A stretch of 41,940 nucleotides of DNA from sequence record LR756500.1; one strand, written 5' to 3'. The position numbers were made by a program, and so were the translations under genes. Positions 4,315 to 41,085 of this stretch are shown piece by piece; within the stretch, counting starts at the first letter, position 1, and each line of letters starts with the position of its first letter. The notes under the pieces are model-generated. The model was not told the DNA's origin. It saw nothing but the letters and a program-made list of their open reading frames with translations, and did no database searches.

Positions 4315-6001
4315 ATTTTAATGAACCACTATCATATATTCTATAAATTTTTCTAGACATCATTATTTCATGTTCTGTCATATTAGAATCATAACCTTCT
4401 TTAACTAATACATCTTTCCTATAATTAAATCTATGTTTTTTAATTCCATCTACTACATACCAATAATTTGGAGGTGTATTATTTATAAAATTGAATCCTA
4501 ATTTATAATAAAGATTTCCTTTACTCCAACTCCTATCAGCATAACTAATTATTCTTATTGGATTATATTCTTTAATAAAATGTTTAAATAAGCGATCAGC
4601 ACCACCAATAACATTAGTATTTAAAATTGTACAGAATCTAAGTAATTCATACTCATTTTCAATTGAAATTTGTCCTAGTGCTTTTCTTAATACACTAAAT
4701 GTCATTAAACTAACTAATTCATTATTATAATATAGCCCATATTTTATTTTAGATGGAGTATATCCTTGTATGTGATTTTTTTCTAAGAAATCTTTTTCTT
4801 CTTTTGTATTAATTTCTTTTATATCACATTTTCTAGCATATATTTTATTATCAGATAAATTTAATATATTTTTTATTCTAGATTTAATTATATCTTTTTT
4901 ATAATACCAATCATCTTCATATATATGTATTAATTTTATATTATTATTTTCAGCTAATTCTGTTTTTTCTAAATGATAATCTTTATCCTTTTGGAGTTCA
5001 TTATGCCAATAAATTCCATTAAATTCAAATCCTATTTTTAAATCAGGTAAATATATATCTATTTCTTTACCATTTAAAAATATTCTTCTATTTAATTCTA
5101 ATGTATTATCATATATTTCACTTATAAATAATTTTAAACTATTTTCAGGTTTTGATAAATTTAATTGATTACAATTTGTGCATGTTTCCTCTTTATTATA
5201 TCTATATCTAAATAAATCTCTACTTATTTTATATGATTTTTTACAATTGTTGCACATAATAGTGAAAAAATCTCTTTCAATAAGAAGTATTTGTTTATCT
5301 GGATATGTTTTTATTATATTTTCTTTTCTTGTTTGTAGTATTTTATATTTAATATTTTCAACTTTATTTGGATTATCTTCTCCATATAGTTCTATCATTG
5401 TATTTTTAAATACATCTTTAACTATTTCCGATTGCCATGGATGATTAGTTCCATAACGTTCTTGGGATGTTTTTTTATATGACTCTTTCCAACTATCTAT
5501 ATTTTCTTTGAATGATTCTATTCTTTTTTCTTGTATCTCCTTTAATTGGGCTACATTTTCTACACCATAACGTTCTAAATTAGTATTCTTTAACTTATTT
5601 TGAATATCTTGTTTTTCTTCTTCGGATTTATTTAATTTAGTATTACTTAATTTATCTTTTATATTCTGTAATTTATTTGGATTATCAACTCCATAACGGT
5701 TTAGACTAGTTTTACGTCTAGATTCTTTCATTTTTTCCTTTAACTCTGGATCATTAACCATACATTCTTTTGAACAGTATCCTGTATATCCAATATCTAA
5801 ATTTTTAAAATTAGAATCTTTATTATTACATACTTTACACTTGGGAACTTCTTTTATTTTATATATGTAGTGCCATATTTTTTGTAAAAAACTGATATCT
5901 AAATCTAAATAACCATTTATCAATTCATACTTAATTGGATAATTTTTCTTTACACTGCGTTCTTGTAATAAATTTCCTTTTAATTCTATAATATTTTCCA
6001 T
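4295..6001 (-). CDS. Hef-like putative homing endonuclease, copy 3 (most divergent, fully visible)
   Basis: RYG repeats, EIDIYLPDLKIGFEFNGIYWH, NHIQG, YELLRFC, ISYADRSWSKGNLYYKLGF. Confidence 0.85.
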   Translation of the reverse strand: MENIIELKGNLLQERSVKKNYPIKYELINGYLDLDISFLQKIWHYIYKIKEVPKCKVCNNKDSNFKNLDIGYTGYCSKECMVNDPELKEKMKESRRKTSLNRYGVDNPNKLQNIKDKLSNTKLNKSEEEKQDIQNKLKNTNLERYGVENVAQLKEIQEKRIESFKENIDSWKESYKKTSQERYGTNHPWQSEIVKDVFKNTMIELYGEDNPNKVENIKYKILQTRKENIIKTYPDKQILLIERDFFTIMCNNCKKSYKISRDLFRYRYNKEETCTNCNQLNLSKPENSLKLFISEIYDNTLELNRRIFLNGKEIDIYLPDLKIGFEFNGIYWHNELQKDKDYHLEKTELAENNNIKLIHIYEDDWYYKKDIIKSRIKNILNLSDNKIYARKCDIKEINTKEEKDFLEKNHIQGYTPSKIKYGLYYNNELVSLMTFSVLRKALGQISIENEYELLRFCTILNTNVIGGADRLFKHFIKEYNPIRIISYADRSWSKGNLYYKLGFNFINNTPPNYWYVVDGIKKHRFNYRKDVLVKEGYDSNMTEHEIMMSRKIYRIYDSGSLKFEWKNE

Positions 6002-9256: not shown

Positions 9257-9280
9257 AATTTTTAATTTTTTTTATTTTTA

Positions 9281-9289
9281 TTATATATC
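9281..9289 (-). promoter_or_regulatory. Late-promoter-like motif GATATATAA (tail sheath)
   Basis: Upstream of sheath ATG. Confidence 0.65.
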
Positions 9290-11271: not shown

Positions 11272-12084
11272 TTAAATTTTAAAATATTTATCTTTTATTT
11301 TAAATGATAAATTATATTCATGCATAAAGTTTTCTTCACCTATATTTTTTATAGTATCTTCTTTCCATTTTTCATTTCTTTGTGGATGATCATACCAATA
11401 AACTTTTTTAACTTTAAATATTTCAGAATCTTGTACAAATTTATAAAATAAATCAAAATGAATATCTGAAGACATAATAATTATTCTAGAATTATTAATT
11501 GAAGCATATAATGGTACTATTTCTTTTATTAAAATTTTTTTATTATTATCAGACATGTTAGAAATATTATCAATTATAAAAATATCATAAAGTTTACCTT
11601 TATAATTATTACTATTTACTAATTGTATACTTGAATTATTATCGAATTCTATTACTTCTGATGTGCTTTTTATAATACCTGGTTTCAAATACATAGGTAA
11701 TTTAGAATAAAAAATTTTAAATTTATTAAATAATTCTCTACCAATTTCATGTTTAATTGAAAATAAAGCTATTTTTTTTTGTTCAAATACTGCAAAATAT
11801 AAAGATAATAATGTATTTAACATTGAAATTCCCATTTGTCTAGAACTTAATAATATTGAAAATCTATTTTCATTCCAAAATTTTAAAATATCTTTTTGAT
11901 ATTCATATAAATTAATATCCAATTTTGATATAAAATATTCAATATCTTTTCTACATTTATAATATTCATCTAATTCATCATAATCTAAAACATATTTAAA
12001 TTTACTATTTTTACTATTAGGTATATTTCTATAACAATATTCATTGCTATTTATACTATTTTTATTTATATAATTCATAACCAT
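11272..12084 (-). CDS. Terminase large-subunit ATPase-domain paralogue with degenerate motifs
   Basis: YKCRKDIEYF, LYEYQ (Q motif), SRQMGIS (Walker A without Lys), FIIDNIS (Walker B DE>DN), YSKLPMYLKPG, VYWYDHPQR; no nuclease domain. Confidence 0.8.
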   Translation of the reverse strand: MVMNYINKNSINSNEYCYRNIPNSKNSKFKYVLDYDELDEYYKCRKDIEYFISKLDINLYEYQKDILKFWNENRFSILLSSRQMGISMLNTLLSLYFAVFEQKKIALFSIKHEIGRELFNKFKIFYSKLPMYLKPGIIKSTSEVIEFDNNSSIQLVNSNNYKGKLYDIFIIDNISNMSDNNKKILIKEIVPLYASINNSRIIIMSSDIHFDLFYKFVQDSEIFKVKKVYWYDHPQRNEKWKEDTIKNIGEENFMHEYNLSFKIKDKYFKI

Positions 12085-12175: not shown

Positions 12176-14062
12176 TTAAATAATATCATAAATATCGAAA
12201 AATAAACTACCATCTTCTCCTTTAGATCCCTTATTTAATTCTTTATCAACTAAATCTTGAATATCTTTTTCTATTATTTCATATAATTCTTCTGCAAAAT
12301 CTGAGAAATCCATAGTAGAAAAGAATTCATTACTGGTTATGCAAGACATTATTAAATCATCGTGTCCCTTCATTCCAGCATAGGATCCAGCTGGAGTTTT
12401 TCCAAATTGTTTAGCTTCTTCTATTGTATTAAATTCAAATAATTGTATTCTATTTTCTCTAATTGATTTTTTAAATTTTTGACATATTATAGGTTTATTA
12501 TCAGTTTTAATTCTTAATCCAAAACTAGGAGTCTTTGCGTCATTTCTATGTTTAAATTTTACTATCATTTCTTCATCAAATTCATTTCTAGATGGAAAAA
12601 TAGTTTGTAAATTTTTAATTAATTCACCACCAAAAGTATTCCATTCTATTATTATTTTTATATTTTCTGCATAAAAAATATCAAAAATTAAAGTATATAA
12701 TATTTTAGCATATTGTTCAGGAGAATGTTCATTACTTCTAAATACTCCTATTTGTTTTAAAGCAAAAAAGTCCATAAAAGAGCCAGGCTGTTTTAGATGT
12801 TTAAACATATCTTTATCTAATAATTCTAGTTTAAAGATATTTATTACAGCATGATCTCCAAAATTACCAGCAGATAAATCACAACTAAATAACCAATAAT
12901 TTTCTTCATTACCTATTTCATCAATATCAAATTTTGGATGCCATTTCAAAAATATTTCATAAGGTATTTCTAAATCTTCTAATTCATCAAATTGATGTGA
13001 TATAAATTCTACTTTTGCATTTTCTAATTTTTTAAGTTCTCCTGGACCTAAAAGTAAATTATCTCCTGATATAAATTGATTACCATATTGTCTATTAAAT
13101 GCATCTTCACCACCTAAATTAGAAATTTCTTTTCTCATCCATTCATTATCTCTTCCTGGAACCTCCCACCAATCAACTCTAAAATCTTTAAATTCATTTT
13201 GTTTTCTAACAGCTCCATCATAAATATCATGAAACTTATTAAATCCATTTGGTGTACTAGTAATAATAATTCTAGATATTTGTGAAGACGATAATGTAGG
13301 AAATACATTTTCATAAAAACTATGTACAAAATTAGGATGTATGTGAGCAAACTCATCTAAAAATAAAAGGTGAATAGTAAAACCTATACCTGCTTTTTTA
13401 GTAGTAGATTGAGCAACAATCCTACAGCCATTATCAAATTTTAAATTAAATACATCATTTTTTAATAATCCTGGTTTCATAAAAAATGGTAAATTATCTA
13501 ATATAACTTTTGCTTTATCTACAATTTCTCTCGTCGTGGCACCTTTATTCGATAAAATTAAACAATTCTTATCAAAATTAAATAATACGTACCATGCTAT
13601 ATAAATTGACGAACATATTGTTTGACTTGAAAGTATACCATTAGTATATAATCTATGATTTGGATGATTTACTGTAACATCAAACATACCTATTTTATTG
13701 TTACTTTTTGATATACTAATAATTTTTTCTAAACCATCGACTGTTATTATTTCCGTATTTAATTCAAGTTTATCGAAAGATATTTTATTATAATTTTTAT
13801 CATAAACTTTATGTAAATCAGCGCCTTCTAAAATTTTACCTGACTCTGTTATTATTGTCCATACTTTATAAGGTTGAGTATTATGAAGATATTGTAATTC
13901 TTCATATCCAGTATCAGTTAAAACTTGTATATATGATAACTTAATAGATTTAATTATTTTTTTAGATATATTATTTTCATCTAAATCTAAATTTCTATAC
14001 TGTATTTTTTCTATTAATTCTATTAAGTATAAAATTATTTTTTTTAATATTTTTTTTATCAT
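12176..14062 (-). CDS. terL: Terminase large subunit, C-terminal part, preceded by split-intein IntC (aa 1-147)
   Basis: Intein blocks EGADLH, MFDVTV..HRLYTNGILSSQ|T, then TICSSIYIAW, Walker B LFLDEFAH, STPNG, nuclease motifs CDLSAG..GD and HDDLIM. Confidence 0.92.
   Translation of the reverse strand: MIKKILKKIILYLIELIEKIQYRNLDLDENNISKKIIKSIKLSYIQVLTDTGYEELQYLHNTQPYKVWTIITESGKILEGADLHKVYDKNYNKISFDKLELNTEIITVDGLEKIISISKSNNKIGMFDVTVNHPNHRLYTNGILSSQTICSSIYIAWYVLFNFDKNCLILSNKGATTREIVDKAKVILDNLPFFMKPGLLKNDVFNLKFDNGCRIVAQSTTKKAGIGFTIHLLFLDEFAHIHPNFVHSFYENVFPTLSSSQISRIIITSTPNGFNKFHDIYDGAVRKQNEFKDFRVDWWEVPGRDNEWMRKEISNLGGEDAFNRQYGNQFISGDNLLLGPGELKKLENAKVEFISHQFDELEDLEIPYEIFLKWHPKFDIDEIGNEENYWLFSCDLSAGNFGDHAVINIFKLELLDKDMFKHLKQPGSFMDFFALKQIGVFRSNEHSPEQYAKILYTLIFDIFYAENIKIIIEWNTFGGELIKNLQTIFPSRNEFDEEMIVKFKHRNDAKTPSFGLRIKTDNKPIICQKFKKSIRENRIQLFEFNTIEEAKQFGKTPAGSYAGMKGHDDLIMSCITSNEFFSTMDFSDFAEELYEIIEKDIQDLVDKELNKGSKGEDGSLFFDIYDII
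13622..14062 (-). mobile_element. Split intein C-fragment (147 aa, atypically long, ends Ser-Gln; +1 Thr)
   Basis: Block B-, F- and G-like motifs; junction codons TCA AGT CAA|ACA. Confidence 0.8.
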
Positions 14063-15162
14063 TATTTATTTTTATTTTCTATAAATTCTAAGCAATTATT
14101 TATTACTAAATCAGGATCTTTATAATATTCTAATTCATTTACATGATATACTTCATATCCTGATCTTAATATTGCATCATCTCTATCTTTTTCTCTTTTA
14201 TTATTTTCGGGATTATTTTTATGATAATATACACCATCAAATTCTATAATTTTATTTATATCTTTTATAAAAAAATCTGGTAAAATTATTCTATTACATA
14301 ATCTTAATCTATATTCTGAATTAGTACCATCATCTAAAATAATTTTATTTTTATTTAAAGTTGCAAAATATATCTCATTATATTTATCTTTTATAATTTC
14401 ATATAAAGAAATAAAAAGTTTCTGTGATACTTTAGAATAACTACTTACTTTAAAATTATTACTCCATCTATTTATTTTTAAATTCCATTTTTCTATACCT
14501 ATTTCTTCTCCATATTTATTTATAAAAAAATTTAAATCTCTACACTGAATTTTAGAAATAATATTTTTTGCTTCTTCTAAAGAAAAACCTCTTCGTATCC
14601 AATATTCTTTATGTATAGGCATAACTCTATTTTTCATAAAATACTTATAATTATCTTTTTTCATAATAAAATATTCTTCATCTGTTAAATTAGGATATCT
14701 CTTTTTATAAAACTCAATAGAAAATGGACTAGTCTCTTTACGTTTTTGCTCAGTAGTTTTACTTTTAGACATAATGTTTCCTTCACCTTTCATTCTATCA
14801 GAAATCCATTTTCTCCATTTATCTTCTTTCATATGTTTACCTCCATTTATAGTTGTTGCCGCTTTATCACTAGGTATACATAATAATGCATCTACACCAA
14901 AATCTTTTCTATAATCACTATTATTTTTATCGGGATGAAATCTTTTGAAATGACCACTATATATTCTTTTAACAGCCATTCCACAATATTTACATATAAC
15001 ATAATCTGTATTTTCTATACTGTTTAATTTTAATTTTTCCGATTCTTTATAAGCACCATAAATACCTTTACATTTATTTGAACAAAATTTAGCACTTATA
15101 GTAGAAGAGTTAAATTCATTTTTACAATGAATGCATTTTATTTTTCTAATTATATTTGACAT
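14062..15162 (-). CDS. Free-standing Vsr/DUF559-like endonuclease between the terL halves
   Basis: Zn motifs CIHC..FCSNKC and CKYC..HFKRFH, KYGEE repeat, LPDFF..IIEFDGVYYH; own TATAAATA promoter; TAATG overlap with TerL-C. Confidence 0.85.
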   Translation of the reverse strand: MSNIIRKIKCIHCKNEFNSSTISAKFCSNKCKGIYGAYKESEKLKLNSIENTDYVICKYCGMAVKRIYSGHFKRFHPDKNNSDYRKDFGVDALLCIPSDKAATTINGGKHMKEDKWRKWISDRMKGEGNIMSKSKTTEQKRKETSPFSIEFYKKRYPNLTDEEYFIMKKDNYKYFMKNRVMPIHKEYWIRRGFSLEEAKNIISKIQCRDLNFFINKYGEEIGIEKWNLKINRWSNNFKVSSYSKVSQKLFISLYEIIKDKYNEIYFATLNKNKIILDDGTNSEYRLRLCNRIILPDFFIKDINKIIEFDGVYYHKNNPENNKREKDRDDAILRSGYEVYHVNELEYYKDPDLVINNCLEFIENKNK

Positions 15163-15166
15163 TTTT

Positions 15167-15178
15167 TATTTATATATT
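15167..15178 (-). promoter_or_regulatory. AATATATAAATA, endonuclease/TerL-C
   Basis: Directly upstream of ATG 15162. Confidence 0.7.
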
Positions 15179-15188
15179 AGATATAGTA

Positions 15189-15764
15189 CTAGCTTCTTGA
15201 TAGATAAGAATATGTTTTATATAAATAATATTTAATTTTATCTAAAAAAGATAATGTTTTATTTGTTTTAGATATAACATAATATAATTCAAATATAGGA
15301 AGTGTATAAGTATTATCTTTATTTTTAAATTTACTTAAACTATTAATTAAAGTAATATCATTTAACTTTATAGTAATTAATATATTATGGAAAAAACATT
15401 TCCCCGTTTGTCTCGCCGCGAGGCAGATACTGAAGCGATTATCAACAAAATGTCTAAGCATTTTTTCTTGATAATCTCTTAATACAATTGTTCTAAGACC
15501 TTCATCGGTCATTACTGTACAATACTTATTAGCAAAATATACTATATCTTTAGCACATTTTCTTATTTCACTTATTTCAAAATCTGTATAATCAAATATT
15601 ATGTTACCTTTTCTTATTGTTGGATTGCCTTCATAAAAGGGAGTTGATTTGGGTTTATAACCTTCATCAATCATATTCATTAATTCATTGATTTTTTCGG
15701 TACTCCATGCTGTTCTTTCTTGCACATTATCTTCTTTATGTGCTAGCGCGTATTCTTCTTCCAT
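15189..15764 (-). CDS. terL: Terminase large subunit, N-terminal part (aa 1-122) + split-intein IntN (aa 123-191)
   Basis: KCAKDIVYFANKYC, LRDYQ, Walker A AARQTGK directly followed by Cys1 (CFFHNILI..LPIFELY). Confidence 0.92.
   Translation of the reverse strand: MEEEYALAHKEDNVQERTAWSTEKINELMNMIDEGYKPKSTPFYEGNPTIRKGNIIFDYTDFEISEIRKCAKDIVYFANKYCTVMTDEGLRTIVLRDYQEKMLRHFVDNRFSICLAARQTGKCFFHNILITIKLNDITLINSLSKFKNKDNTYTLPIFELYYVISKTNKTLSFLDKIKYYLYKTYSYLSRS
15192..15398 (-). mobile_element. Split intein N-fragment of terL (69 aa)
   Basis: Cys after GK; block A-like; no block B, which is in the other half. Confidence 0.75.
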
Positions 15765-15774
15765 ATTTTAATTA

Positions 15775-16686
15775 TTAATCGAAAAAACCGAATTCAGTGG
15801 CATTTTCTATGTGTTCATATTTAACTCGTAAATCTTTAGGTAATAATTTAACTAAATGATTTAAATCATTTAAATTATTATCAAATATTTTTACAAAATT
15901 TGTTTTTATTTTTTTAAACATTATATCTAATATTTTAATTAAATATTGTTTATCCATTTTAATTTCTTTAACAACTATATTAAAAGTTTTTAATATTTCT
16001 AATAAATATTCTAAATTAGTTTCACTATAATCTAAATATTTATTGTTAAATATATTATATAATCTTACATCATTTTCATTATTATCACCTGTTTCTATAC
16101 TATTATATTTTGATATCATTTTCAATACTAAATTAATATCATTTATAGTAACATATTTATGTAAAAAATCACTATGTATAAAATTGTTTATCTTTTTTTC
16201 TATGTTATCATATTCCTTTTTTGCATTAGCTTTTAGATCGCTACTTGTTTCTAAATGATTTTGTAAAAAGAAAGTACTTTCATAATATTGAGTAGTTACT
16301 AAAAAAAATTTATCATTTCTATTTAAAACTTCTATTTCTGGTCCAGGCACAAATTCACTATTCATAGAAGGATGTTCTTCTTGATAATAATGTTTTCTAC
16401 TTATTCCTATTTCTGGAAAATCTTTAGCCATCAATAAAAAACAAGGTTGGTTTAAAACAGGTAGTTTGATATCACCTATTTCTAAATTATGTGGAGTATT
16501 TGATCTATTAGAAATTAATAATCTAGTAACTTCTTTTATAACATTTCCACTTTTTTCTCTAAGTAACCATGCAACAAGTCCGTCTTTATCATAAATTTCT
16601 TTAAAATATTTTTTACTAATATTATGATTAATTGAATCATGAACAGATTCAATTAAAAAATCTTTATATGTTTGAATATATTTCAT
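15775..16686 (-). CDS. Hypothetical protein with CTS-like leader [14 protein letters not shown]
   Basis: 303-aa ORF, no recognisable domain; ends KYEHIENATEFGFFD. Confidence 0.75.
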   Translation of the reverse strand: MKYIQTYKDFLIESVHDSINHNISKKYFKEIYDKDGLVAWLLREKSGNVIKEVTRLLISNRSNTPHNLEIGDIKLPVLNQPCFLLMAKDFPEIGISRKHYYQEEHPSMNSEFVPGPEIEVLNRNDKFFLVTTQYYESTFFLQNHLETSSDLKANAKKEYDNIEKKINNFIHSDFLHKYVTINDINLVLKMISKYNSIETGDNNENDVRLYNIFNNKYLDYSETNLEYLLEILKTFNIVVKEIKMDKQYLIKILDIMFKKIKTNFVKIFDNNLNDLNHLVKLLPKDLRVKYEHIENATEFGFFD

Positions 16687-16695
16687 TTAGTTATT
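16654..16695. repeat. 42-bp direct repeat, copy A (identical to 17439-17480)
   Basis: Minus strand AATAACTAAATGAAATATATTCAAACATATAAAGATTTTTTA. Confidence 0.95.
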
Positions 16696-16697
16696 TT

Positions 16698-17471
16698 TTA
16701 ATTATCGAAANNNNNNNNNNNNNNNNNNNNNNNNNNNNNNNNNNNNNNNNNNNNNNNNNNNNNNNNNNNNNNNNNNNNNNNNNNNNNNNNNNNNNNNNNN
16801 NNNNNNNNNNNNNNNNNNNNNNNNNNNNNNNNNNNNNNNNNNNNNNNNNNNNNNNNNNNNNNNNNNNNNNNNNNNNNNNNNNNNNNNNNNNNNNNNNNNN
16901 NNNNNNNNNNNNNNNNNNNNNNNNNNNNNNNNNNATTCTTTAAATTGCCAATCTCCTTTGGCAACTCAGTTAATTTATTATTATCTAAATTTAAATATGT
17001 TAATTTAGTTAAATTACCAATCTCCTTTGGCAACTCAGTTAACTGATTATTATATAAATTTAAAATTTTTAAATTCATTAAATTACCAATCTCCTTTGGT
17101 AACTCAACCAACTGATTTCTATTTAAATTTAATTCTTCTAAATTCTTTAAATTTCCTATTTCCTTTGGAAATTCCTTCAACTTATTATCACGTAAATTTA
17201 ATTCTGTTAATNNNNNNNNNNNNNNNNNNNNNNNNNNNNNNNNNNNNNNNNNNNNNNNNNNNNNNNNNNNNNNNNNNNNNNNNNNNNNNNNNNNNNNNNN
17301 NNNNNNNNNNNNNNNNNNNNTATTTAACTTATTATTATTTAAAGTTAAAGCTGTTAAGTTAACTAATTTTTCAATTGAAACTTTAGCTAAATTAGCTATT
17401 AACTCTAATGTATCTAATTTAACTTCTTTAGCTTCTAATAAAAAATCTTTATATGTTTGAATATATTTCAT
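16698..17471 (-). CDS. Leucine-rich-repeat protein with CTS-like leader [14 protein letters not shown]
   Basis: 23-aa repeats [23 protein letters not shown], visible as ~69-nt DNA repeats; N-runs 16711-16934 and 17212-17320. Confidence 0.9.
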
Positions 17472-17480
17472 TTAGTTATT
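17439..17480. repeat. 42-bp direct repeat, copy B
   Basis: Spans the last two codons and stop of terS and first 11 codons of the LRR gene. Confidence 0.95.
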
Positions 17481-18239
17481 ATCATTTTCAAAATCTTCAG
17501 GATCTGGTCCAAAATCCTCTTCATCATCTACATCTAAATCTTCATCTAAATCAATCACAGGTTCAATAGTTTCAGCATTTTGATAATTTTTAGTAATTAA
17601 ATCTTCTTGAGTTATTGATTCTTCTTGATCAATTATTTCTTCTTTTTTAAGACTTTGCTGTATAGCTTTCATTAAATCTTTTTGTCCTCTTGAACTGACG
17701 CCTGATTTGTTAGTAGCTTCTTTACTATTAGATGTTGTAGATTTTCCTTTGTATACTTCATAATCTCTTCCTATTCTTTTAATATCTTCTTCAGCAGCCA
17801 TCATATACATAGTTTGACTTTTAATAATATCAAGCATTGTCTTTTGAAGTTGACCTAATACCTCAAACATTCTTGGATGCATATCTCCATCTTCTATTGC
17901 TTCTAATAATCTTGTCATAGATCGTTCAGAAGTTTCTAATAAATAAATTAATTTTGAAAGACCTGAATTTTTAGCTTCTATTTTAGCTTTAATATATTCT
18001 TCATGTTCAATTATATCTTCATCTAAATAGAATTTTAGTAATGAAATAATTGTATTACGAGCTCTATCTTCTGCCTTATCTTTTATTGTTTTAAATATTG
18101 TACCAGACATTTTAACTGAAGGAAGAGCATCATCGGCCTTTTCATTAGTATTAATTTCATCAGGAAGACCGTCTATTATTAAATCACTTATAGACATTCT
18201 TACGAATTCCTTATCATCTTCACTTATTTTATCGTTCAT
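17472..18239 (-). CDS. terS: Probable terminase small subunit (T4 gp16-like)
   Basis: HPRMFEVLGQLQKTMLD resembles the gp16-family HPRxxEVxxQL motif; acidic tail; upstream of terL. Confidence 0.7.
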   Translation of the reverse strand: MNDKISEDDKEFVRMSISDLIIDGLPDEINTNEKADDALPSVKMSGTIFKTIKDKAEDRARNTIISLLKFYLDEDIIEHEEYIKAKIEAKNSGLSKLIYLLETSERSMTRLLEAIEDGDMHPRMFEVLGQLQKTMLDIIKSQTMYMMAAEEDIKRIGRDYEVYKGKSTTSNSKEATNKSGVSSRGQKDLMKAIQQSLKKEEIIDQEESITQEDLITKNYQNAETIEPVIDLDEDLDVDDEEDFGPDPEDFENDNN

Positions 18240-18257
18240 TATTTATAATATTAAAAA

Positions 18258-19733
18258 TTATACTCTTTTTTTAGCACCCTTATTTTCTTCAACAGAAGAA
18301 ATATTTATTTTTTTACCGAATGATACATTAGTATTATTCATTATATCATCTGATATTATCCAAAGTACTTTTTTAGCATACTTTGGAGTTGGTGGCATAG
18401 GAGCCAATCCATCAGTAAAGTACATCATTGCACCTAATTTTTGACCTTTATTTAAATTAGCATTAACCCATTCAAATGGTGGTTCAAATGAAGTTCCACC
18501 TCCACCTTTAAAAGATAATAAATCTTTTGCTATATTATCTCCTTTTAATTTGTGTATTACTGGATCTTGTATATTATAATCACAATGTATTATATAAATA
18601 TCTCTAATATCATAGTTATTGCAAAGATTAAGTATCTCAGCTCCAAATACTTCTAGCATACTAGTACTAACACTTCCAGAAGTATCAACAGCAATAACAA
18701 GATTTCTCATTGAATCTTCTTTATATTTAAGACCTGGTATATAAATTCCTTTACTAATATATCTCCTGTTAGGCATTTTATATTCCATGTTTCTAACAGC
18801 GAGTTTTAAAAATTTTCGTACTTCAGCTCTCCAATTAATTTGTGGAACACTTAATCTTGCAATAATTCTATCTATAGATGAACTACCTAATCCTCTTCCT
18901 TTAGATGCATTTCTTCGCATATAATCTTCCCACCATGTTCCACTTTTTCCTTCTGATTTATTTTCTCCTTCAATTTTACCAAATGTTCCTTTTTTCCATA
19001 CAGCACCAGCATTACCTAATTCAGATCCATGACCTTGTCCGGTTCCATTACATGCAGGACAAGTCGAACTACCTTGACCCTGACCTTGACCCTGTCCTTG
19101 ACCCTGACCTTGACCCTGTCCTTGACCTTGACCCTGACCTTGACCCTGTCCTTGACCTTGACCCTGTCCTTGACCCTGACCCTGTCCTTGACCTCCTGGA
19201 ATAGTTCCTGATCCATTACATCTAGGACATCCTTGTTTTGGAAATTTAGATTTTATTTCATCATAAATATCTTCTGCACTTTCACCATGATATTTTATAT
19301 CATACATTACATCATTAGGCATTTTTATTCCTGATGATTGTTCCATTTCTTTAAGAATACTATTAATAGCATAATCTGCTGCTACATTCCAAGGTTTATG
19401 TTCTCTATTTTTTATTCTTTCATGATGCATTAATGTACAATGTAATACTTCGTGCATAATAACAAATTTAAGTTCGTCCATCGTAAGTTTTAATGTAAAA
19501 TCTGGATCATATACAACAACAATTCCATCTGTTCCCATTGTACCTTGTGCTTCACCATTAATATCTTGTTTCCATTCTAATGCCGCAATAGCTTCTGCAA
19601 AAAATGGAAATTTACCTGAAACTTGACTAATAGCAGTTCTTATTTTTTTATCAGCATCAGGATTATATTTTAATGGATAATTTATAATAAGATTTTCAAA
19701 TATAAAATTTTCATAACTTTTAATATATTTCAT
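18258..19733 (-). CDS. DUF2201-type metallopeptidase + vWA protein with CTS-like leader
   Basis: MGTDG, HEVLH (HExxH), NVAADYAIN, MIDAS motif VDTSGSV, GGGTSF, YFTDG; leader MKYIKSYENFIFEN. Confidence 0.9.
   Translation of the reverse strand: MKYIKSYENFIFENLIINYPLKYNPDADKKIRTAISQVSGKFPFFAEAIAALEWKQDINGEAQGTMGTDGIVVVYDPDFTLKLTMDELKFVIMHEVLHCTLMHHERIKNREHKPWNVAADYAINSILKEMEQSSGIKMPNDVMYDIKYHGESAEDIYDEIKSKFPKQGCPRCNGSGTIPGGQGQGQGQGQGQGQGQGQGQGQGQGQGQGQGQGQGQGQGQGSSTCPACNGTGQGHGSELGNAGAVWKKGTFGKIEGENKSEGKSGTWWEDYMRRNASKGRGLGSSSIDRIIARLSVPQINWRAEVRKFLKLAVRNMEYKMPNRRYISKGIYIPGLKYKEDSMRNLVIAVDTSGSVSTSMLEVFGAEILNLCNNYDIRDIYIIHCDYNIQDPVIHKLKGDNIAKDLLSFKGGGGTSFEPPFEWVNANLNKGQKLGAMMYFTDGLAPMPPTPKYAKKVLWIISDDIMNNTNVSFGKKINISSVEENKGAKKRV
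19071..19196 (-). repeat. (Gly-Gln)20 hexanucleotide microsatellite between two CxxCxGxG motifs
   Basis: 20 in-frame GGN-CAR units; much higher GC than surroundings. Confidence 0.95.
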
Positions 19734-19739
19734 AATATA

Positions 19740-21434
19740 TTACTTTTTATTATATTTTTCTTGATCTTCAGGTCTCCAAAATTCTTGTTTATATGTATCA
19801 CTCCATAATTTAATTGCTTTTTGTACTCCATCAGGATCTTCTGTTTTTAAATATGGATGAACATCTAATATCATTTTAACTAAAAGATTAGCCCATTCCA
19901 TTTGTTTTAATCTAATTGAATATTTTACAACATTTATTAATTCTTTAGAAGTAATTTTTTTTCTACTTCTTTTATAAGCAATTGCAGACATCATAGCTTG
20001 AGCAACATTTGCATTAAGTGATTGTTTATCTTTTCCTCCACCTACATTAAATGTTAAAGGAGCACTAGGTGGAATTTTTGCTTTATCTGGATCAGAGTAT
20101 ACATAATCTATATCTTTATCATCCATATGACCAGCTATAGTATTTTTAAATGCTATAAACATCATAGCAGGAGTTTTGCCTATTGTAGTTTCTAATGCAT
20201 CTAATATATCTTGATCGGTTAATTCTTTTCCTTCTGTTTTAGCTATTTTTTCATACCATGCATATTTTTTTGCTGCTTCAACCCAAGATCTTGGAGAAGC
20301 CCATACTGGAGATTCTTCTCCAATAATATATCTATGAAAATATTTTTCATTAAATTTAATAAAAGCTAGCATATGGCTACTTAATAAAATTTCTTTAGCT
20401 ATTTGTATATCAGAATCTGGATCTTTTTCTTTTGTTTTAAGCCATTTTTCCCATGAAGCAGGATCTGCTACTAAATTAACATGATGAAATCTATTTCCTA
20501 ATGCAGAACCTAAATCTTCAACATCTGCATTTTCTTCTCCACTAGATCTATTTCCAGCAGATATTATAACCCATTCGCTAGGAAGTTCATAATCACCTGT
20601 TTTTAATCCACCTCCTAATTTTCTATCTAAAACAAATTGTAATGAAGCTTTTATTACAGGAATAGCAGCTCTATTCATTTCATCGAAAAATATAATTCCA
20701 CCTTTTCCGTTTTCTCCATTTGTTGTTGGAAATACTAATGGAGTAGCATATCTGGTTCTACCTACTTTAACTATTTTACCAGTAGCATCTGGCATATCAA
20801 CATATACAATTTCAGGTACTCCGACAAAATCTGTTGGATCTTTTAATGATAAATTAAATATAATTAAATCTTTTCCATATTCATCTGCAATTTGTTTAAC
20901 TATATCAGTTTTACCAACACCTGGAGCTCCCCATATAAATAATGGTGATTTTTTTTCTACTGCATATCTTAAATTCATTTTAAGACCTTTAACATCTACA
21001 TTTTTAACTTCTTTACTTGGATGACTTAAATCTAATGGATTTTCTTCACCAACTATTCCTTCTTCCAAATTTTTAATATTAATATCTGGAACATTTTTAT
21101 TTTTTAATGTATTACAATAATATTCTATTCCCCATTTTTTAAGTTGTCCTTTTTTTTGTAAAAATAATAAATTATATGACCAAGCATGTTTTCCAAATTT
21201 TTCAATAAACCAATTTGTTATTTTAGTCCATATTGCATTAAATAATCCTTCATTTAATTCATCATTTAATTCATCATTATTATTAAAATTAGAATATATT
21301 TCATCTAATTCATCATAAGCTGAATTAAATTCAGGTTCAGGTTCAGCTTTATTTACAATTTTATTAAATTTATATTCTGCCAATAAATTAATAGAAATAT
21401 GTTCAGAATACTGCGTAAAATTTTTGAAACTCAT
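19740..21434 (-). CDS. MoxR/dynein-related AAA+ ATPase
   Basis: Walker A WGAPGVGKT, Walker B IFFDEMNRA, sensor SAGN, ALGNRF, SPRSW; adjacent to vWA partner. Confidence 0.92.
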   Translation of the reverse strand: MSFKNFTQYSEHISINLLAEYKFNKIVNKAEPEPEFNSAYDELDEIYSNFNNNDELNDELNEGLFNAIWTKITNWFIEKFGKHAWSYNLLFLQKKGQLKKWGIEYYCNTLKNKNVPDINIKNLEEGIVGEENPLDLSHPSKEVKNVDVKGLKMNLRYAVEKKSPLFIWGAPGVGKTDIVKQIADEYGKDLIIFNLSLKDPTDFVGVPEIVYVDMPDATGKIVKVGRTRYATPLVFPTTNGENGKGGIIFFDEMNRAAIPVIKASLQFVLDRKLGGGLKTGDYELPSEWVIISAGNRSSGEENADVEDLGSALGNRFHHVNLVADPASWEKWLKTKEKDPDSDIQIAKEILLSSHMLAFIKFNEKYFHRYIIGEESPVWASPRSWVEAAKKYAWYEKIAKTEGKELTDQDILDALETTIGKTPAMMFIAFKNTIAGHMDDKDIDYVYSDPDKAKIPPSAPLTFNVGGGKDKQSLNANVAQAMMSAIAYKRSRKKITSKELINVVKYSIRLKQMEWANLLVKMILDVHPYLKTEDPDGVQKAIKLWSDTYKQEFWRPEDQEKYNKK

Positions 21435-21448
21435 AACTTTTATTTTTT

Positions 21449-21457
21449 TTATATATT
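21449..21457 (-). promoter_or_regulatory. AATATATAA, AAA+/vWA/terS operon
   Basis: Overlaps gp14-like stop, upstream of ATG 21434. Confidence 0.55.
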
Positions 21458-23405
21458 AACGATTGTTTGCTTTTCTTGCTAGACGTATACCAGGCATTGC
21501 ATTATCTACTATTTCACTTAAATGAGTATCAGCAACAACATATTGATTTAATATTAAAGATTGTTCTTCTTCTTCAATAGGTGATTTAAATATTCTTATA
21601 TTGGTTAACTCTATTGGGCATGAAATTAATTTCCAATCTAACCCATCTGTTATAATATATTTTTCATTTAATTGTTTAGTTTCAGTAAATGAATTTTTTA
21701 GTGTACTACCAATATTAAATGCTCCAGTACCTGTTATTTTTTCTATTTCATATACGAATAAACTTAATTGTTTAAATGTATTAGAAAAATTGATAACTAT
21801 TCCATACCAATTATCAGTTAAAATTTGAAAATCTTTTGCTTTTAAATCAAAGTAATAATCATAATTATTAATATTTATAATAAATGCATCCTTTATAAAA
21901 CCAATTTCAAATTTATCGCTATATTGTAAATATTTGCAATATTCATATTTTCTGGACCTTGCATTAATACGCACATTTGTTATATATATGGTACTAATTG
22001 TAAATTTATTGCTATTAACAGCTATAATGCGATGTATACCATTATAATCTTGTGTACCTGTTATTCTAACGATATCACCAACTACATAGTCATTTGTAGC
22101 TAATTGAAATACAGTGTTATTATTGATATCAGATTCTATATTTTCTATAACCAATGAATTATATGATATTCTGCTAGAAGATTTTATCCACATTGTAAAT
22201 GCTCTATTTTCATCAACTGTTATTCCTTTATTATATCTATAAATAGCTGCAATGCTATCTTTAGTTATAGAAGATAGATCATATTGATATTTTGATATTA
22301 CAGTATAATTATTTCTAATTTGATTATCATTAATTTTTAATCTTATATCTATTTCTTTTCTTATATAATCTTTATCATTAGTTCCTAATGTATTATATTG
22401 ATTAGCTTTTCTAACTTTAATTATCTCTTCTTCTTTTTCTTCTTTAAATCTTTCTTCTGTACTATCAATTATACTATCAATTTCTTCTCTAATTTCAGGA
22501 CCAGCTTCTTCTTGTTCATAATCTCTATTCTGTCTATCTTGCCAATCAGTTAAATTAACTTTATAAAAAGGAGTTTCATATAAAGAAGCATTTGGTAAAG
22601 CTATAGAATTTATTTCAAACATTCTATCAATCATTGGAAACCATATTGCATCTCCTTGTCCTGGTCTTTCTCCTTTTCCAAATGCTGCTTCAAAATGAGT
22701 TTTAATTATATGTACTTCAAACATATCTGGAACTTCCATATCTAATTGACTAAAATGAATTTCACGGCTTGGAAATTCATTATTAGGAACAACAACTTTT
22801 AAATCATCAACTTCCTTAACATTGTATAAAGAATATTCTTTAAATATAACATCTCTAGAATCTGATTTTGGATTTTGTTTATAATATCTAACAGGTAGTC
22901 CAAATATTGTTCCTACTAAACAACTTAATTGATTATAATTAGATCTAGCATTTTGTAAATTTGCATATGGATCAAATACAGCTTCTGGACAACAATCGTC
23001 AATTATTAATGTTTCATTTGGAGCACAATCATCACCATTACAATATTCAACACATGGAATATCTACAATAGATCCATTAGTTGTTATTGTTTCTAACGAT
23101 ATTGATTCAAAAGTTAATGTATTTCCAGTACTTATAGATTCAACTTCATATTTATATTGTATCCAAAAAGGCTTAGTTGAATCTAATTCTAATTCTTGTA
23201 AATTATCATTAGTTAAAATAATCCAATCTGAATAAAATTTATTATCAATTGACCATCTAAAATATTTATAAAAAAAATTATATGTATCTTCACCAGAAAT
23301 TTCATCTTGATAAGATTCAATACTTGAAATATTCTCGTAAGGTTTAATTAAACTTATAAATAAAATATCTCCCTTTTGTGTAGCTGATCTTCCTTCTACT
23401 GCCAT
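21456..23405 (-). CDS. Neck/head-closure protein (T4 gp14-like) with N- and C-terminal extensions
   Basis: RPGQGDAIWFPMIDRMFEINSI matches the gp14 motif PxxGDxIxFPxxxxLFEI; GLPVRYY..DVIFKEY. Confidence 0.7.
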   Translation of the reverse strand: MAVEGRSATQKGDILFISLIKPYENISSIESYQDEISGEDTYNFFYKYFRWSIDNKFYSDWIILTNDNLQELELDSTKPFWIQYKYEVESISTGNTLTFESISLETITTNGSIVDIPCVEYCNGDDCAPNETLIIDDCCPEAVFDPYANLQNARSNYNQLSCLVGTIFGLPVRYYKQNPKSDSRDVIFKEYSLYNVKEVDDLKVVVPNNEFPSREIHFSQLDMEVPDMFEVHIIKTHFEAAFGKGERPGQGDAIWFPMIDRMFEINSIALPNASLYETPFYKVNLTDWQDRQNRDYEQEEAGPEIREEIDSIIDSTEERFKEEKEEEIIKVRKANQYNTLGTNDKDYIRKEIDIRLKINDNQIRNNYTVISKYQYDLSSITKDSIAAIYRYNKGITVDENRAFTMWIKSSSRISYNSLVIENIESDINNNTVFQLATNDYVVGDIVRITGTQDYNGIHRIIAVNSNKFTISTIYITNVRINARSRKYEYCKYLQYSDKFEIGFIKDAFIININNYDYYFDLKAKDFQILTDNWYGIVINFSNTFKQLSLFVYEIEKITGTGAFNIGSTLKNSFTETKQLNEKYIITDGLDWKLISCPIELTNIRIFKSPIEEEEQSLILNQYVVADTHLSEIVDNAMPGIRLARKANNR

Positions 23406-23431
23406 TTTTTATTTTGTTATACATTTATTTA

Positions 23432-23440
23432 TTATATATC
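23432..23440 (-). promoter_or_regulatory. GATATATAA, neck gene
   Basis: Between terminator hairpin and ATG 23405. Confidence 0.65.
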
Positions 23441-26075: not shown

Positions 26076-26837
26076 TTATACATTATTAACTACGTTTTGA
26101 ATCTCATAAATCGCGGCCAATAGTGAAATCTGTGGATCAATTACCTGTTGACGAGTAGATTGATATTTATTTACAGTTATAATAATTTGTGGAAGATATT
26201 TTAATTTATCAGGTTTTTCTTGTTGTAAATATTCAATAAATTCTGTACCTAAAGATGCTAATACATCATCAACTCTATTAGAATAATTAGAAACTAAATA
26301 TTGATAATTTTTAACAGGATCTATATTATCGAAAATTAATTGAAATATATCTTTATAAACGCTATTAAATTTTTTAATATCATCTATTGATATTTTTTCT
26401 TTACCTTCATTTTTATATCCTTGTAAAGTATTTAGCATACTTCTAAAGTCAGGAAATTTTCTTTTAACTAATTCTAATAATGCTTCTTTATCTATAATTA
26501 AATTTTCAGCTTTACATATATTCCACAATCTAATTAAATAACCTTTCATTAATTCAGATTCTTCTTCTTTAGAAAAATCAAAATTAATTAATTCAAATCT
26601 AGATTTAACTGCTTCATCTATTTTATTAATATAATTACTAGTAGCAATAAATCTAGAATTAGCATGAAATTCTTCCATAGATGCTTTAAATGCTTTAAAA
26701 AATTGCTGTGAAGCACCATCACAATTATGAGTACATATTCCATTTTCTGTTAAAAATGTATGATTTTTATATACTGTTAAATTTAAAACTCTTCCTTTAT
26801 CTATTTTTTTAATTTGTTTTATTTTAAATGTTTTCAT
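26076..26837 (-). CDS. Clamp loader (gp44/RFC-like) C-terminal part, preceded by split-intein IntC (aa 1-38)
   Basis: MKTFKIKQIKK..NLTV..NHTFLTENGICTHN|CDGAS, then RFIATSN..KIDEAVKSRF, FPDFRS. Confidence 0.92.
   Translation of the reverse strand: MKTFKIKQIKKIDKGRVLNLTVYKNHTFLTENGICTHNCDGASQQFFKAFKASMEEFHANSRFIATSNYINKIDEAVKSRFELINFDFSKEEESELMKGYLIRLWNICKAENLIIDKEALLELVKRKFPDFRSMLNTLQGYKNEGKEKISIDDIKKFNSVYKDIFQLIFDNIDPVKNYQYLVSNYSNRVDDVLASLGTEFIEYLQQEKPDKLKYLPQIIITVNKYQSTRQQVIDPQISLLAAIYEIQNVVNNV
26724..26837 (-). mobile_element. Split intein C-fragment (38 aa, His-Asn end, +1 Cys)
   Basis: Canonical block F/G, Lys-rich. Confidence 0.9.
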
Positions 26838-28155
26838 TTATTAAAAAATTTTTGATTTTATTATTTACTTTTTCTGGAATTTTAAAATTATTTTTTTTAA
26901 CAATATTATCGAAATGTATATATGTATAATTTTTAAAAAAAAATTCATCAATTCTTTTATATGTAAAAAAATTTAAGTTACACCAATAAATTAAACTTTC
27001 TTCTTTTAAAATATTAATATCTTTATTCATATAAATTGATGGTTTTATTTCATATACAACTTTATTTTTATAATCTATAAAATCTATTATATAAATTTTT
27101 TCAATATTATTATAAGTATAAGGTATTCTTAAATCTTCATATTTTAAATCTAAATTTTCATTTAAAATAAAAAAACATAATTCCCAAGAACTTCTAAATT
27201 TATACTCAATATTATTGTGTCTTAAATAAATATCTAATTTTGTCCAATAATTATTAATATTAGGTTTAAATCTATTTTCTGATATAGCCTTCTTAAGAGC
27301 AATACTTTGTTTTTTCCTTCTTTCATCGGTAACATAAAATTTAAAATTTTTATGATAACATTTTAATGAACAGGTATATTGTGATTTTGTTTTTCCTTTT
27401 CCAAATAATTGTTTATATTCATATTCTTTATCACATATTTTACATATTTTAATATTTTCATGATAATATGTTTTTACAAAATCTAAAAATTTATCTTTAT
27501 ATAGTTTTTTATAAAAAAATCTTTTATTTCTTAAATTCTTTTTAATATAAAAACAAGTATCCTCACTTAAATAATAATCTTTTAAATCAATTTTCTTTTT
27601 ATTATAAAAATAATTTAATCTAAAATCATTAAACATATTAATGGGATTTTCAACTTTGTTTAATATGAAATTTTTATATAAAATATGTTTTACCTTTTTA
27701 ATATCTTTATATTCATTTAATAATTTATAACTTATTAAATTTAAATATGAATAATCATAAGGTTGAAAATTATCAATTATATGTTCATTTTTAAAAAAAT
27801 ATCTTTTATATTTTTGACAATAATCATCATTACATTTATAAATTCTTCTATTTTTTAAATCTTTAATCTTTATATTATTATTACATATTTTACATTTTAC
27901 AATCTTTTCATCATTTTTTTCCTTTTTTAATTTATTACGTTTTTTTGCACATTCTATTAAAAATGTTTTTTGACATTTTTCATTACAACATATTTCTTTA
28001 TATCCTGTAAAAAAACCTCTAAATTTTGCATTAGATCCACAATATTTACACTTAGGTATATTTATATTATTTTCTTTTAAATATGCTTCTTCAATAGAAG
28101 CATATTTAAATCTAAATTTATTAATTAAACTTCTATTATAACTACTATAACCCAT
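26824..28155 (-). CDS. Free-standing TnsA-like PD-(D/E)xK endonuclease between the clamp-loader halves
   Basis: Several CxxC Zn motifs, FRSSWE..IPY..YIIDFID..YEIKP; own TATAAATA promoter. Confidence 0.8.
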   Translation of the reverse strand: MGYSSYNRSLINKFRFKYASIEEAYLKENNINIPKCKYCGSNAKFRGFFTGYKEICCNEKCQKTFLIECAKKRNKLKKEKNDEKIVKCKICNNNIKIKDLKNRRIYKCNDDYCQKYKRYFFKNEHIIDNFQPYDYSYLNLISYKLLNEYKDIKKVKHILYKNFILNKVENPINMFNDFRLNYFYNKKKIDLKDYYLSEDTCFYIKKNLRNKRFFYKKLYKDKFLDFVKTYYHENIKICKICDKEYEYKQLFGKGKTKSQYTCSLKCYHKNFKFYVTDERRKKQSIALKKAISENRFKPNINNYWTKLDIYLRHNNIEYKFRSSWELCFFILNENLDLKYEDLRIPYTYNNIEKIYIIDFIDYKNKVVYEIKPSIYMNKDINILKEESLIYWCNLNFFTYKRIDEFFFKNYTYIHFDNIVKKNNFKIPEKVNNKIKNFLINENI

Positions 28156-28164
28156 TAATATTTT

Positions 28165-28176
28165 TATTTATATATC
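28165..28176 (-). promoter_or_regulatory. GATATATAAATA, TnsA-like endonuclease
   Basis: Upstream of ATG 28155. Confidence 0.7.
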
Positions 28177-28194
28177 CCATTATATTTTTAAATG

Positions 28195-28821
28195 TTATAA
28201 AAAACATATTATATTATCCGTCAAACTTAGTCCATTTTTTATAGATTTTTCCATAATTTTACTATCCTTTGTGAGAATCATAAAGGGATGATTCTCAGTA
28301 ACATTGATAGTTTTTCCATCTTCTAATTCTATTTCATATAAATCATCAATTTTATCAGAAATTATTTCACATGTATCATTTTCTAATTTTCCAGTTTCAG
28401 TATTCATAGAAATACAATCATATATAGTATTTTTTTCTAAATTTTTTAATTTTATAGATTTCCAATTATTAAGTTTACCTATTCTTACCTTTTCATCTTC
28501 TTGTAAACATTCGTCTAGAATAACAACTTTAAGTTTTCCAGGTTCATCCATTATTGATCTAGTAGAACAAAAATCTGTTATTTTTTCTCTAACAACATCT
28601 ACTGATGTTTCTTTAGATGAATTAATATAAATATATGGATATCCAAATTCTTTAACAATAGCTTTAGCAACAGAAGTTTTACCTAAACCCGGACTTCCAT
28701 AAAATAAATAATTTTGAAGTTGACCAGATTTGAATTTTTCCTTTAAAAAATTTGGAACTACTATGTCATCTATTTTTGTTGGACGATATTTTTCTGTCCA
28801 TAATATTTCAGATATCTTCAT
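28195..28821 (-). CDS. Clamp loader (gp44/RFC-like) N-terminal part (aa 1-104) + split-intein IntN (aa 105-208)
   Basis: LWTEKYRP, Walker A GSPGLGKT, Walker B VILDE|C, intein block B VTENHPF. Confidence 0.92.
   Translation of the reverse strand: MKISEILWTEKYRPTKIDDIVVPNFLKEKFKSGQLQNYLFYGSPGLGKTSVAKAIVKEFGYPYIYINSSKETSVDVVREKITDFCSTRSIMDEPGKLKVVILDECLQEDEKVRIGKLNNWKSIKLKNLEKNTIYDCISMNTETGKLENDTCEIISDKIDDLYEIELEDGKTINVTENHPFMILTKDSKIMEKSIKNGLSLTDNIICFL
28198..28509 (-). mobile_element. Split intein N-fragment of clamp loader (104 aa)
   Basis: CLQEDEKV block A, LYEIELEDGKTINVTENHPF block B. Confidence 0.9.
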
Positions 28822-32123: not shown

Positions 32124-32138
32124 GTAAATGTATTTTTA

Positions 32139-39591: not shown

Positions 39592-39642
39592 TTCAAACTA
39601 TATTTTATTATATATATTAGAATAATTTTAGAAAGTTTGAAT

Positions 39643-41053: not shown

Positions 41054-41085
41054 AAAAAAGACTCTTAGAAATAAGAGTCTTTTTT
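41054..41085. terminator. Bidirectional terminator-like hairpin between tnpB and Hef-like copy 5
   Basis: AAAAAAGACTCTTA-gaaa-TAAGAGTCTTTTTT, 14-bp stem incl. A/T tails. Confidence 0.85.

Follow-up and report, generated by a model that had tools for sequence, protein, structure and literature searches.

A perfect 42-bp repeat encodes a leader resembling the T4 capsid targeting sequence at two unrelated genes between terS and terL of a huge phage

Introduction

The internal proteins of phage T4 have only one part in common, the capsid targeting sequence (CTS) MKTYQEFIAE of about 10 residues, which targets them to the scaffolding core and is cleaved once by the prohead protease (PMC8442874, PMC3012670, PMC5694885). 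These proteins are dedicated inhibitors of host restriction systems (PMC12373910). In this study, we analyzed a stretch of 41,940 nucleotides (nt), called the window below, which is part of LR756500.1, the 462,018-bp record of an uncultured phage. In this window, a perfect 42-bp direct repeat encodes the same leader peptide at the start of two otherwise unrelated genes lying between terS and terL. One of them encodes leucine-rich repeats (LRR) and the other encodes a protein of 303 amino acids (aa).

The concept of diverse injected proteins that share only a CTS and are encoded at hyperplastic loci is already known from T-even phages. According to Repoila et al. (1994), as cited in PMC3012670, PMC2839356, and PMC12373910, the internal-protein loci of these phages are hypervariable and only the CTS is conserved. 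As in our window, diverse genes share only the leader there, and the citing passages mention a proposal that repeated flanks drive the shuffling. The T-even flanks, as characterized in PMC2839356, are intergenic sequences resembling promoters and stem-loops, whereas the identical tract in the window consists of leader coding sequence plus 9 nt. The T4-type phages RB49/phi1 have been documented to form mini-circles between repeats that flank a gene (PMC2839356). The PeSL cassettes of these phages are similar to our locus in that direct repeats surround single open reading frames (ORFs) without an integrase, and in both cases clean deletion and a mini-circle are predicted. However, a PeSL is made of an intergenic promoter and a stem-loop, whereas the present repeat is coding and has neither promoter nor hairpin. 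In the phiKZ-like phage SPN3US (PMC5694885), head-internal proteins also have N-terminal propeptides removed by a related prohead protease, and identical N-termini on diverged paralogues have been noted. The SPN3US propeptides differ in being mostly longer than 100 residues, in their A/S/G-x-E motif, and in coming from a different phage lineage. With regard to integron cassettes, no integrase was found among the ORFs of the window, and the locus was not assigned to that class. The only recombinase-like ORF is a transposase-like gene (phrog_506, 40017-40886, plus strand), 22 kb away.

The closest resemblance is to the T4 CTS and its carriers, the internal proteins IPI-III and Alt, where a short leader likewise starts at Met1 of otherwise unrelated proteins, gp21-, gp23-, and gp20-type head genes occur in the same genome, and cargo loci vary between relatives. 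The present leader has 13 residues compared with 10 in T4, with an extra Y-I after M-K, and it is known from genes alone. T4 has a handful of CTS carriers, and the present genome has at least 17-25. The T4 carriers are small and basic, whereas those described here are 80-490 aa long and include LRR, DUF2201/VWA, and PNK3P phosphatase proteins. Unlike in T4, the carriers are spread over the genome and are found inside the terS-terL junction, and a subset of them has an additional conserved C-terminal motif.

Results

Two unrelated genes start within a perfect repeat

The source of the window is a T4-like 'huge' phage with a 462-kb genome from a groundwater metagenome, and the public runs for this source are groundwater metagenomes. 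The window is colinear with LR756500.1 at about 100% identity, with record positions equal to window positions plus 182060. Two runs of N lie inside the LRR gene (16711-16934 and 17212-17320). Since one constant offset holds on both flanks of both runs, they are in-place masks of true length. The LRR frame is unbroken from the ATG across both runs to a visible F-D-N-stop. Two genome-wide pattern searches each gave one match positioned within the first N run, and these matches were not counted.

The genes of interest are on the minus strand in the order MoxR-like AAA, 491-aa DUF2201/VWA, terS-like, LRR, 303-aa, split terL, sheath, and tube, which corresponds to T4 genes 16-17-18-19. The terS-like gene (17472-18239, -; 255 aa) occupies the gp16 position in T4 synteny, and its assignment is based on phrog_735 (E 2.6e-4) together with the terS-terL-sheath-tube order conserved in relatives. 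Its stop codon directly abuts the ATG of the LRR gene (16698-17471, -), which has 257 codons and is partly masked. This is followed by the 303-aa gene (15775-16686, -) and by the gp17-like terL, which is in two pieces (12176-15764, -) and forms the downstream boundary of the interval.

A sequence-only reading of the window had claimed that a perfect 42-bp repeat encodes a leader common to these two genes and that the genes are otherwise unrelated. Both claims were confirmed. Positions 16654-16695 and 17439-17480 are identical at 42/42 nt on the minus strand, and a repeat search extended the similarity to 16645-16695 versus 17430-17480 (94% over 51 nt). We estimate the chance of such a repeat in a 42-kb window of 25% GC at about 1e-12, and an origin by chance was rejected. 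Each copy comprises 9 nt before an ATG and codons 1-11 (33 nt of coding sequence). In copy 1 (16654-16695, -), the 9 nt are part of the 11 spacer nt after the LRR stop and the codons are those of the 303-aa gene. In copy 2 (17439-17480, -), the 9 nt are the last two codons and the stop of terS, followed by the codons of the LRR gene. The repeat is not an imperfect palindrome. The bodies of the LRR and 303-aa proteins, trimmed at both ends, gave no blastp match to each other at E<1e-3.

The LRR gene consists of tandem 23-residue LRR units with a 69-nt period, and 92 visible residues in the ORF frame matched LRR_14 (E 3e-23) and LRR_8 (E 5e-16). It is one of at least six LRR paralogues in the genome, at least five of which lie elsewhere. 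The 303-aa protein is a strict ORFan for which two very large searches returned no homologue. A kinase-like fold was considered for it and disregarded, as the Atlas model was too poor (pLDDT 0.40, TM 0.35).

The leader segment has been exchanged between neighbours

The LRR gene was compared in ungapped alignments with the 303-aa gene and with LRR paralogues. From -9 to +33, it matched the 303-aa gene at 42/42 positions and LRR paralogues at 26-30/42. From +52 to +151, it matched the 303-aa gene at only 35/100 positions and two LRR paralogues at 80/100. The LRR gene is thus a mosaic whose identity to the 303-aa gene ends sharply in codon 12. Because the breakpoint lies within this codon, the leader segment must have been exchanged between unrelated neighbours, and the absence of any difference in 42 nt, compared with about 20% divergence between LRR paralogues, indicates that the exchange was recent. 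A second case was seen in an array at 313-317 kb of the record, in which three different bodies have leaders identical at 38-39/39 nt, whereas the mean identity over all leader pairs is 28.6/39 nt (about 73%). We have high confidence in the structural findings as a whole.

Since the repeat takes in the last two codons of terS, the exchange may have altered the terS end as well. The terS C-terminus, ..EEDFGPDPEDFENDNN (17472-17530, -), is acidic and aromatic and loosely recalls the C-terminal motif of the leader family described below; the terS proteins of relatives end differently.

Recombination between the direct repeats would take out the LRR gene and nothing else, in frame, and the terS stop would then abut the ATG of the 303-aa gene. 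The public k=31 contigs end exactly 30 nt into each repeat copy, and the k=31 graph fits both the assembled order and a terS-303 junction plus a 785-bp circle. An IMG/VR copy of the genome has an arrangement identical to that of LR756500.1, although it is probably not independent, being likely from the same sample. Ongoing excision of the LRR gene is hypothetical.

The leader heads a family of genes

The leader has 13 residues, M-K-[YF]-[IL]-x-x-Y-x-x-[FH]-[ILV]-x-E. It was searched for as a DNA pattern, M-K-[YF]-[ILV..]-x-x-Y-x-x-[FHY]-[hydrophobic]-x-E, with the reversed pattern as the control. LR756500.1 gave 17 strict matches compared with none for the reversed pattern. Looser variants, in which D or another residue replaces the last E, occur in arrays and bring the family to about 25 genes. 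The leader genes are scattered over the 462-kb genome, and several of them form tandem arrays. The window has four, and the leaders there end in ..TYKDFLIE, ..TYKDFLLE, ..SYENFIFE, and ..TYENHIEE. Codons vary synonymously among the 17 leaders (AAA/AAG, TAT/TAC, GAA/GAG) while the residues are constant, so that the peptide is what selection acts on. Apart from the LRR paralogues, the bodies of the carriers are unrelated, and Pfam and PHROGs searches with about 30 leader proteins mostly gave no family match.

A tight leader pattern had no match in IMG/VR beyond the same genome, and a looser pattern was used instead. With it, 46 stretches matched compared with 1 for the reversed pattern. About 40 of 52 IMG/VR leader matches begin ORFs of at least 100 aa with diverse bodies and an in-frame stop a few codons upstream. 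In total, the leader was found at the start of genes with varied bodies on 34 other large-phage contigs. These contigs are mostly 5-45% complete (CheckV), and the one complete record is 640 kb; they therefore appear to be fragments of large genomes. In contrast, 596 Gb of bacterial and archaeal genomes gave only 15 matches, mostly short or internal to other frames.

The 491-aa protein has homologues in Bacillus phage G and Acinetobacter phage nACB1, which align only from about residue 20-28 and have unrelated start residues. Since these DUF2201 homologues start without the leader, the leader is an add-on. DUF2201 homologues on other leader-bearing contigs were too few for comparison.

Two arrays of leader genes were also observed outside the window. 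Seven adjacent leader genes form a tandem array at L020:8076-12268, corresponding to LR756500.1 at about 11.7-15.9 kb, with six on one strand and one convergent. The C-terminal motif closes five of the seven, and LRR paralogues account for two. The second array is at 313-323 kb of the record (L037, L044). The leader protein MKYIQTYDDFLNE (L044:489-1121, -) has a polynucleotide kinase 3'-phosphatase (PNK3P)/HAD domain (E 2.4e-21), and another leader protein (L037:5371-5775) has a weak GNAT-like match. In another leader gene, MKYIKDYNDFINE (L044:5792-6400, +; LR756500.1 at about 322391-323000), a single in-frame stop follows codon 50, and the same frame resumes past the stop to the C-terminal motif and its own stop. 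It was probably a working member of the family until recently and has since been inactivated.

The leader resembles the T4 CTS and co-occurs with a T4-type head module

Over its final eight residues, x-Y-x-[ED]-F-[IL]-x-E, the leader agrees with the T4 CTS, and it closes with the L/I-x-E motif of the T4 protease. A T4-type head module lies about 4 kb outside the window. In it, the N-terminal part of a 632-aa ORF (L079:1823-3721; protease domain at residues 1-230) is a Peptidase_S77 domain (E 6.3e-11; Peptidase_S77 was also scored at E 2.3e-12 in this genome) for which a match to the T4 gp21 structure 5JBL was found. No family matched the long C-terminal part of the ORF, and we suspect that this part is a putative scaffold. 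The genome also encodes a Gp23-type capsid protein (E 8e-34) and a T4-type portal (Portal_T4, gp20-like, E 2.3e-70). The same protease family was found on 11 of the 34 other leader-bearing contigs, most of which are very incomplete. From these sequence comparisons, the leader may be a capsid-targeting propeptide, the counterpart of the T4 CTS, and we consider this somewhat probable.

Leader genes share a second motif at the C-terminus

The 303-aa ORF ends in ..EFGFFD-stop and the LRR ORF visibly ends in ..FDN-stop. A 7-mer shared by the two ends was rejected as trivial by itself. Across the genome, however, nine genes including the 303-aa gene carry the motif K-Y-[ED]-H-[LI]-x-N-A-D-D-F-G-[FM]-[FL], often followed by D-N. 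The pattern gave 10 matches in LR756500.1 compared with 0 in the control. Eight of the nine genes terminate in the motif with synonymous codon variation, and in the 303-aa gene T-E replaces D-D (..KYEHIENATEFGFFD, at about 15778-15822). All nine bear the leader or a leader variant, attached to an LRR body in some and to a different body in others. The motif also fits the F-D-N-stop visible in the window LRR gene. In IMG/VR, the motif was not found at ORF ends outside this genome, and the matches there were chance ones inside unrelated ORFs, which indicates that the motif is lineage-specific. It could be a further signal for sorting or docking, or simply a terminus conserved in a family that is expanding. 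Recombination would also gain another handle from it.

Gene content around terS varies among relatives

Four IMG/VR contigs encode terS at 47-53% identity. In three of them (L014-L016), terS is followed directly by an unsplit terL (606-608 aa), and a homologue of the 649-aa gene of the window (21456-23405) directly precedes terS. In the fourth (L013), a different 238-aa leader gene, MKYLKDYDEFINE, precedes terS and a leaderless 242-aa ORF follows it. The number of genes between terS and terL is therefore 0 in L014-L016, 1 (leaderless) in L013, and 2 (both with the leader) in the window. Because three relatives lack them around terS, the AAA, 491-aa, LRR, and 303-aa genes are insertions. Three of these four (491-aa, LRR, and 303-aa) carry the leader. 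The fourth, the MoxR-like AAA ATPase gene (19740-21434, -), is leaderless, is inserted relative to 3/4 of the related contigs, and is the partner gene of the DUF2201/VWA protein.

Promoter-like motifs and other features of the window

The 491-aa leader gene, MKYIKSYENFIFE (18258-19733, -), encodes DUF2201_N metallopeptidase-like and VWA-like domains. A 12-nt periodic repeat inside this gene (19047-19206, -) gives the protein a long (G-Q)n run with a Cys-rich motif on either side. In the IMG/VR copy, neighbouring leaders are spaced 15 nt further apart than they are in the window, and so the length of the (G-Q)n run may vary. The remaining leader gene of the window, MKFLETYENHIEE (31335-32123, -), is a 262-aa ORFan in the tail-fibre region, with a promoter-like motif 21 nt upstream.

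This motif, ATATAATWAA, has 20 matches in the window compared with 9.1 expected. It lies 21-32 nt before the genes for the tube (2599-2608) and sheath (9277-9286), the 491-aa gene (19746-19755), the 649-aa gene (23428-23437), the 262-aa gene (32135-32144), and a 1501-aa gene (39604-39613), all on the minus strand. It thus precedes sheath, tube, two large structural genes, and two leader genes. It looks like a late-type promoter and is a candidate for that of the phage. The copy before the 491-aa gene, ATATAATAAA (19746-19755, -), 22 nt from the start, could drive the DUF2201-terS-LRR-303-terL run. No such motif was found before the LRR or 303-aa genes.

The two pieces of terL (15189-15764 and 12176-14062, -) are separated by an endonuclease-like ORF of 366 aa with a DUF559/MTES_1575-type end (14062-15162, -). 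The break is right after the Walker-A G-K, where the N-piece continues C-F-F-H-N.., and in the C-piece terL homology returns only after about 145 additional N-terminal residues, which end in ..NGILSSQT. The layout resembles that of a 'fractured' gene in which a split intein is combined with a free-standing endonuclease. The split-intein reading was not supported, as no intein domain was found in Pfam. Downstream, a 270-aa ORF (11272-12084, -) carries the ATPase region of terL a second time (phrog_5989, E 2.9e-29). A similar split is seen in the clamp-loader gene (26076-28821, -), with the N-part at 28195-28821 (phrog_168 positions 7-117), the C-part at 26076-26837 (positions 110-309), and a 443-aa endonuclease-like ORF between them (26824-28155). 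In the probable source run, separate contigs cover 15100-15447 and 15418-16683, the latter differing from the window at 15456 and 15458, close to its end, and one contig skips 15338-15461. These contigs suggest strain variation around the terL break (window 15100-15470). Two paralogous HNH/homing-endonuclease genes (phrog_3339) were found at 4295-6001 and 41065-41940 (-). Together with the transposase-like ORF, these homing endonucleases make this part of the genome rich in selfish elements.

Discussion

In this study, we found that two unrelated genes between terS and terL start within a perfect repeat encoding a leader that heads a family of genes in a huge phage. We propose that the repeat is a recent recombination or gene-conversion tract in leader-coding DNA. 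The leader would act as an amphipathic propeptide and direct its protein to the scaffolding core of the prohead. A gp21-type prohead protease would then cut it after [LIV]-x-E, leaving the mature body inside the head, from which it would pass into the host cell together with the DNA. Two of these cargo genes would be the LRR and 303-aa genes, probably co-transcribed with terS and terL from the late-type promoter. The similar leader DNA in every member would serve as a handle by which homologous recombination moves, replaces, or deletes bodies. In the window, such recombination would have given the LRR gene the leader of its neighbour, leaving direct repeats able to delete the LRR gene in frame. 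Taken as a whole, we favour this explanation with moderate confidence.

Several observations weigh against the proposal. The agreement with the T4 CTS covers only eight residues, which is a likeness for which homology is not provable. The search pattern itself accounts in part for the [ILV]-x-E ending, and in some members D or another residue takes the place of the final E. The other leader-bearing contigs carry only 1-2 strict copies each. An excised, circular, or deletion joint was not seen in three runs, a weak result because only k=31 contigs were searched. The presence of the leader proteins in virions, their cleavage, and their injection are predictions from gene sequence. In addition, some of the cargo is atypical of head proteins, such as the protein with a polynucleotide 3'-phosphatase domain. 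The T4 enzyme related to PNK3P is not known to be packaged.

The leader could instead be a peptide tag of another kind, for a chaperone, for the adjacent MoxR/VWA pair, for a compartment, or for degradation or secretion, or it could be an oligomerisation helix; the repeat would still be a recombination tract. Any peptide tag is compatible with conservation at the peptide level and with phage specificity, the cargo includes enzymes that are cytoplasmic in other phages (PNK3P), and a second, C-terminal tag in the same genome is not predicted by the T4 paradigm. We regard this as a possible but less probable reading, because the leader agrees with the T4 CTS in its core and closes with the protease motif of T4, because it co-occurs with a T4-type head module and protease, and because several members are located within or beside late genes for structure and packaging and behind the late-type promoter motif. 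A further reading takes the leader repeats as sites of active and frequent cassette exchange, with mini-circles excised and re-inserted in each infection as in PeSL, and the terS-terL interval as a dedicated swappable effector site. The in-frame deletion of exactly one gene that the repeats would allow, the tandem arrays, the mini-circle precedent in RB49/phi1 (PMC2839356), and the k=31 graph, which fits a circle equally well, are all in line with it. However, no deletion or circle junction appeared in the three runs (weak evidence, as it comes from contigs only), the two assemblies agree on the order (although they are probably from the same sample), leader genes occur genome-wide rather than only between terS and terL, and at about 73% identity most leader pairs are a poor substrate for homologous exchange. 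This reading is therefore distinctly unlikely.

Plain tandem duplication, in which the LRR and 303-aa genes would be diverged paralogues and the repeat a remnant, was rejected as very improbable. The two proteins do have their first 13 residues and a similar C-terminal ending in common. This is already contradicted by their dissimilar cores and by the mosaic breakpoint, with identity stopping sharply in codon 12 and 0/42 differences against about 20% LRR paralogue divergence; moreover, the close LRR paralogues elsewhere have leaders unlike that of the window LRR gene. An assembly artefact, in which the assembler put the LRR gene between the repeat copies, is scarcely credible. Contigs built with a short k do end at the repeat, which leaves the graph by itself ambiguous. 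However, the IMG/VR contig has the same order as the curated record, the frames are intact and the terS stop meets the LRR ATG without any disturbance, and by our reasoning Illumina reads of at least about 100 nt, if used, would span a 42-nt repeat and allow an assembler to resolve it.

Our proposal of a CTS-like leader with a recombination tract agrees in part with the sequence-only reading. The likeness of the leader to the T4 CTS, the variable terS-terL content in relatives, and the similar ends of the two genes had all been put forward there, and they were borne out by the eight-residue core and the gp21-type protease, by the 0, 1, or 2 genes found, and by the nine-gene C-terminal motif. 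The suggested swappable locus between terS and terL stood only in part: the breakpoint lies inside the leader and the content varies, but this is not a dedicated site, as the leader heads at least 17 genes across the genome and others in other large phages. Overall, that interpretation is partly supported.

A more speculative extension concerns both ends of the proteins. The lineage may tag a large, fast-evolving set of proteins, largely LRR binders, with a CTS-like N-terminal propeptide and a lineage-specific C-terminal tag, K-Y-[ED]-H-[LI]-x-N-A-D-D-F-G-F-[FL]-(D-N). The ends would act as sorting signals, to the head and/or to a partner such as terminase, portal, or clamp, and as handles for swapping the middle, giving an integrase-free diversification of injected effectors. 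We consider this idea tentative and rather unlikely. For the present, the C-terminal tag is an unexplained second signal.

We found no paper that contains the leader strings or describes the 13-residue variant, the LRR-rich family, its terS-terL position, the breakpoint, or the C-terminal tag, and the huge-phage paper (PMC7162821) makes no mention of internal proteins, LRR, or prohead protease. We believe that the following are new: the 13-residue leader variant and its spread in uncultured huge phages, how large the family is and what it contains (LRR proteins included), the terS-terL position, the clean mosaic breakpoint, and the C-terminal tag.

Almost all knowledge of huge phages comes from metagenomes, and no function has been assigned to the majority of their genes. 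The locus provides a clear natural example of shared-signal recombination placing a new body behind an existing leader, which has been proposed for T-even phages but is rarely so clean. If the leader works like the T4 CTS, the 13-residue motif would predict from sequence which proteins of an uncultured phage are loaded into the head and delivered to the host. There would be about 20 candidates here, among them the six members of the LRR family, the metallopeptidase/VWA protein, and the polynucleotide phosphatase. Because the T4 counterparts inhibit host restriction (PMC12373910), this list would then be a catalogue of candidate counter-defence effectors.

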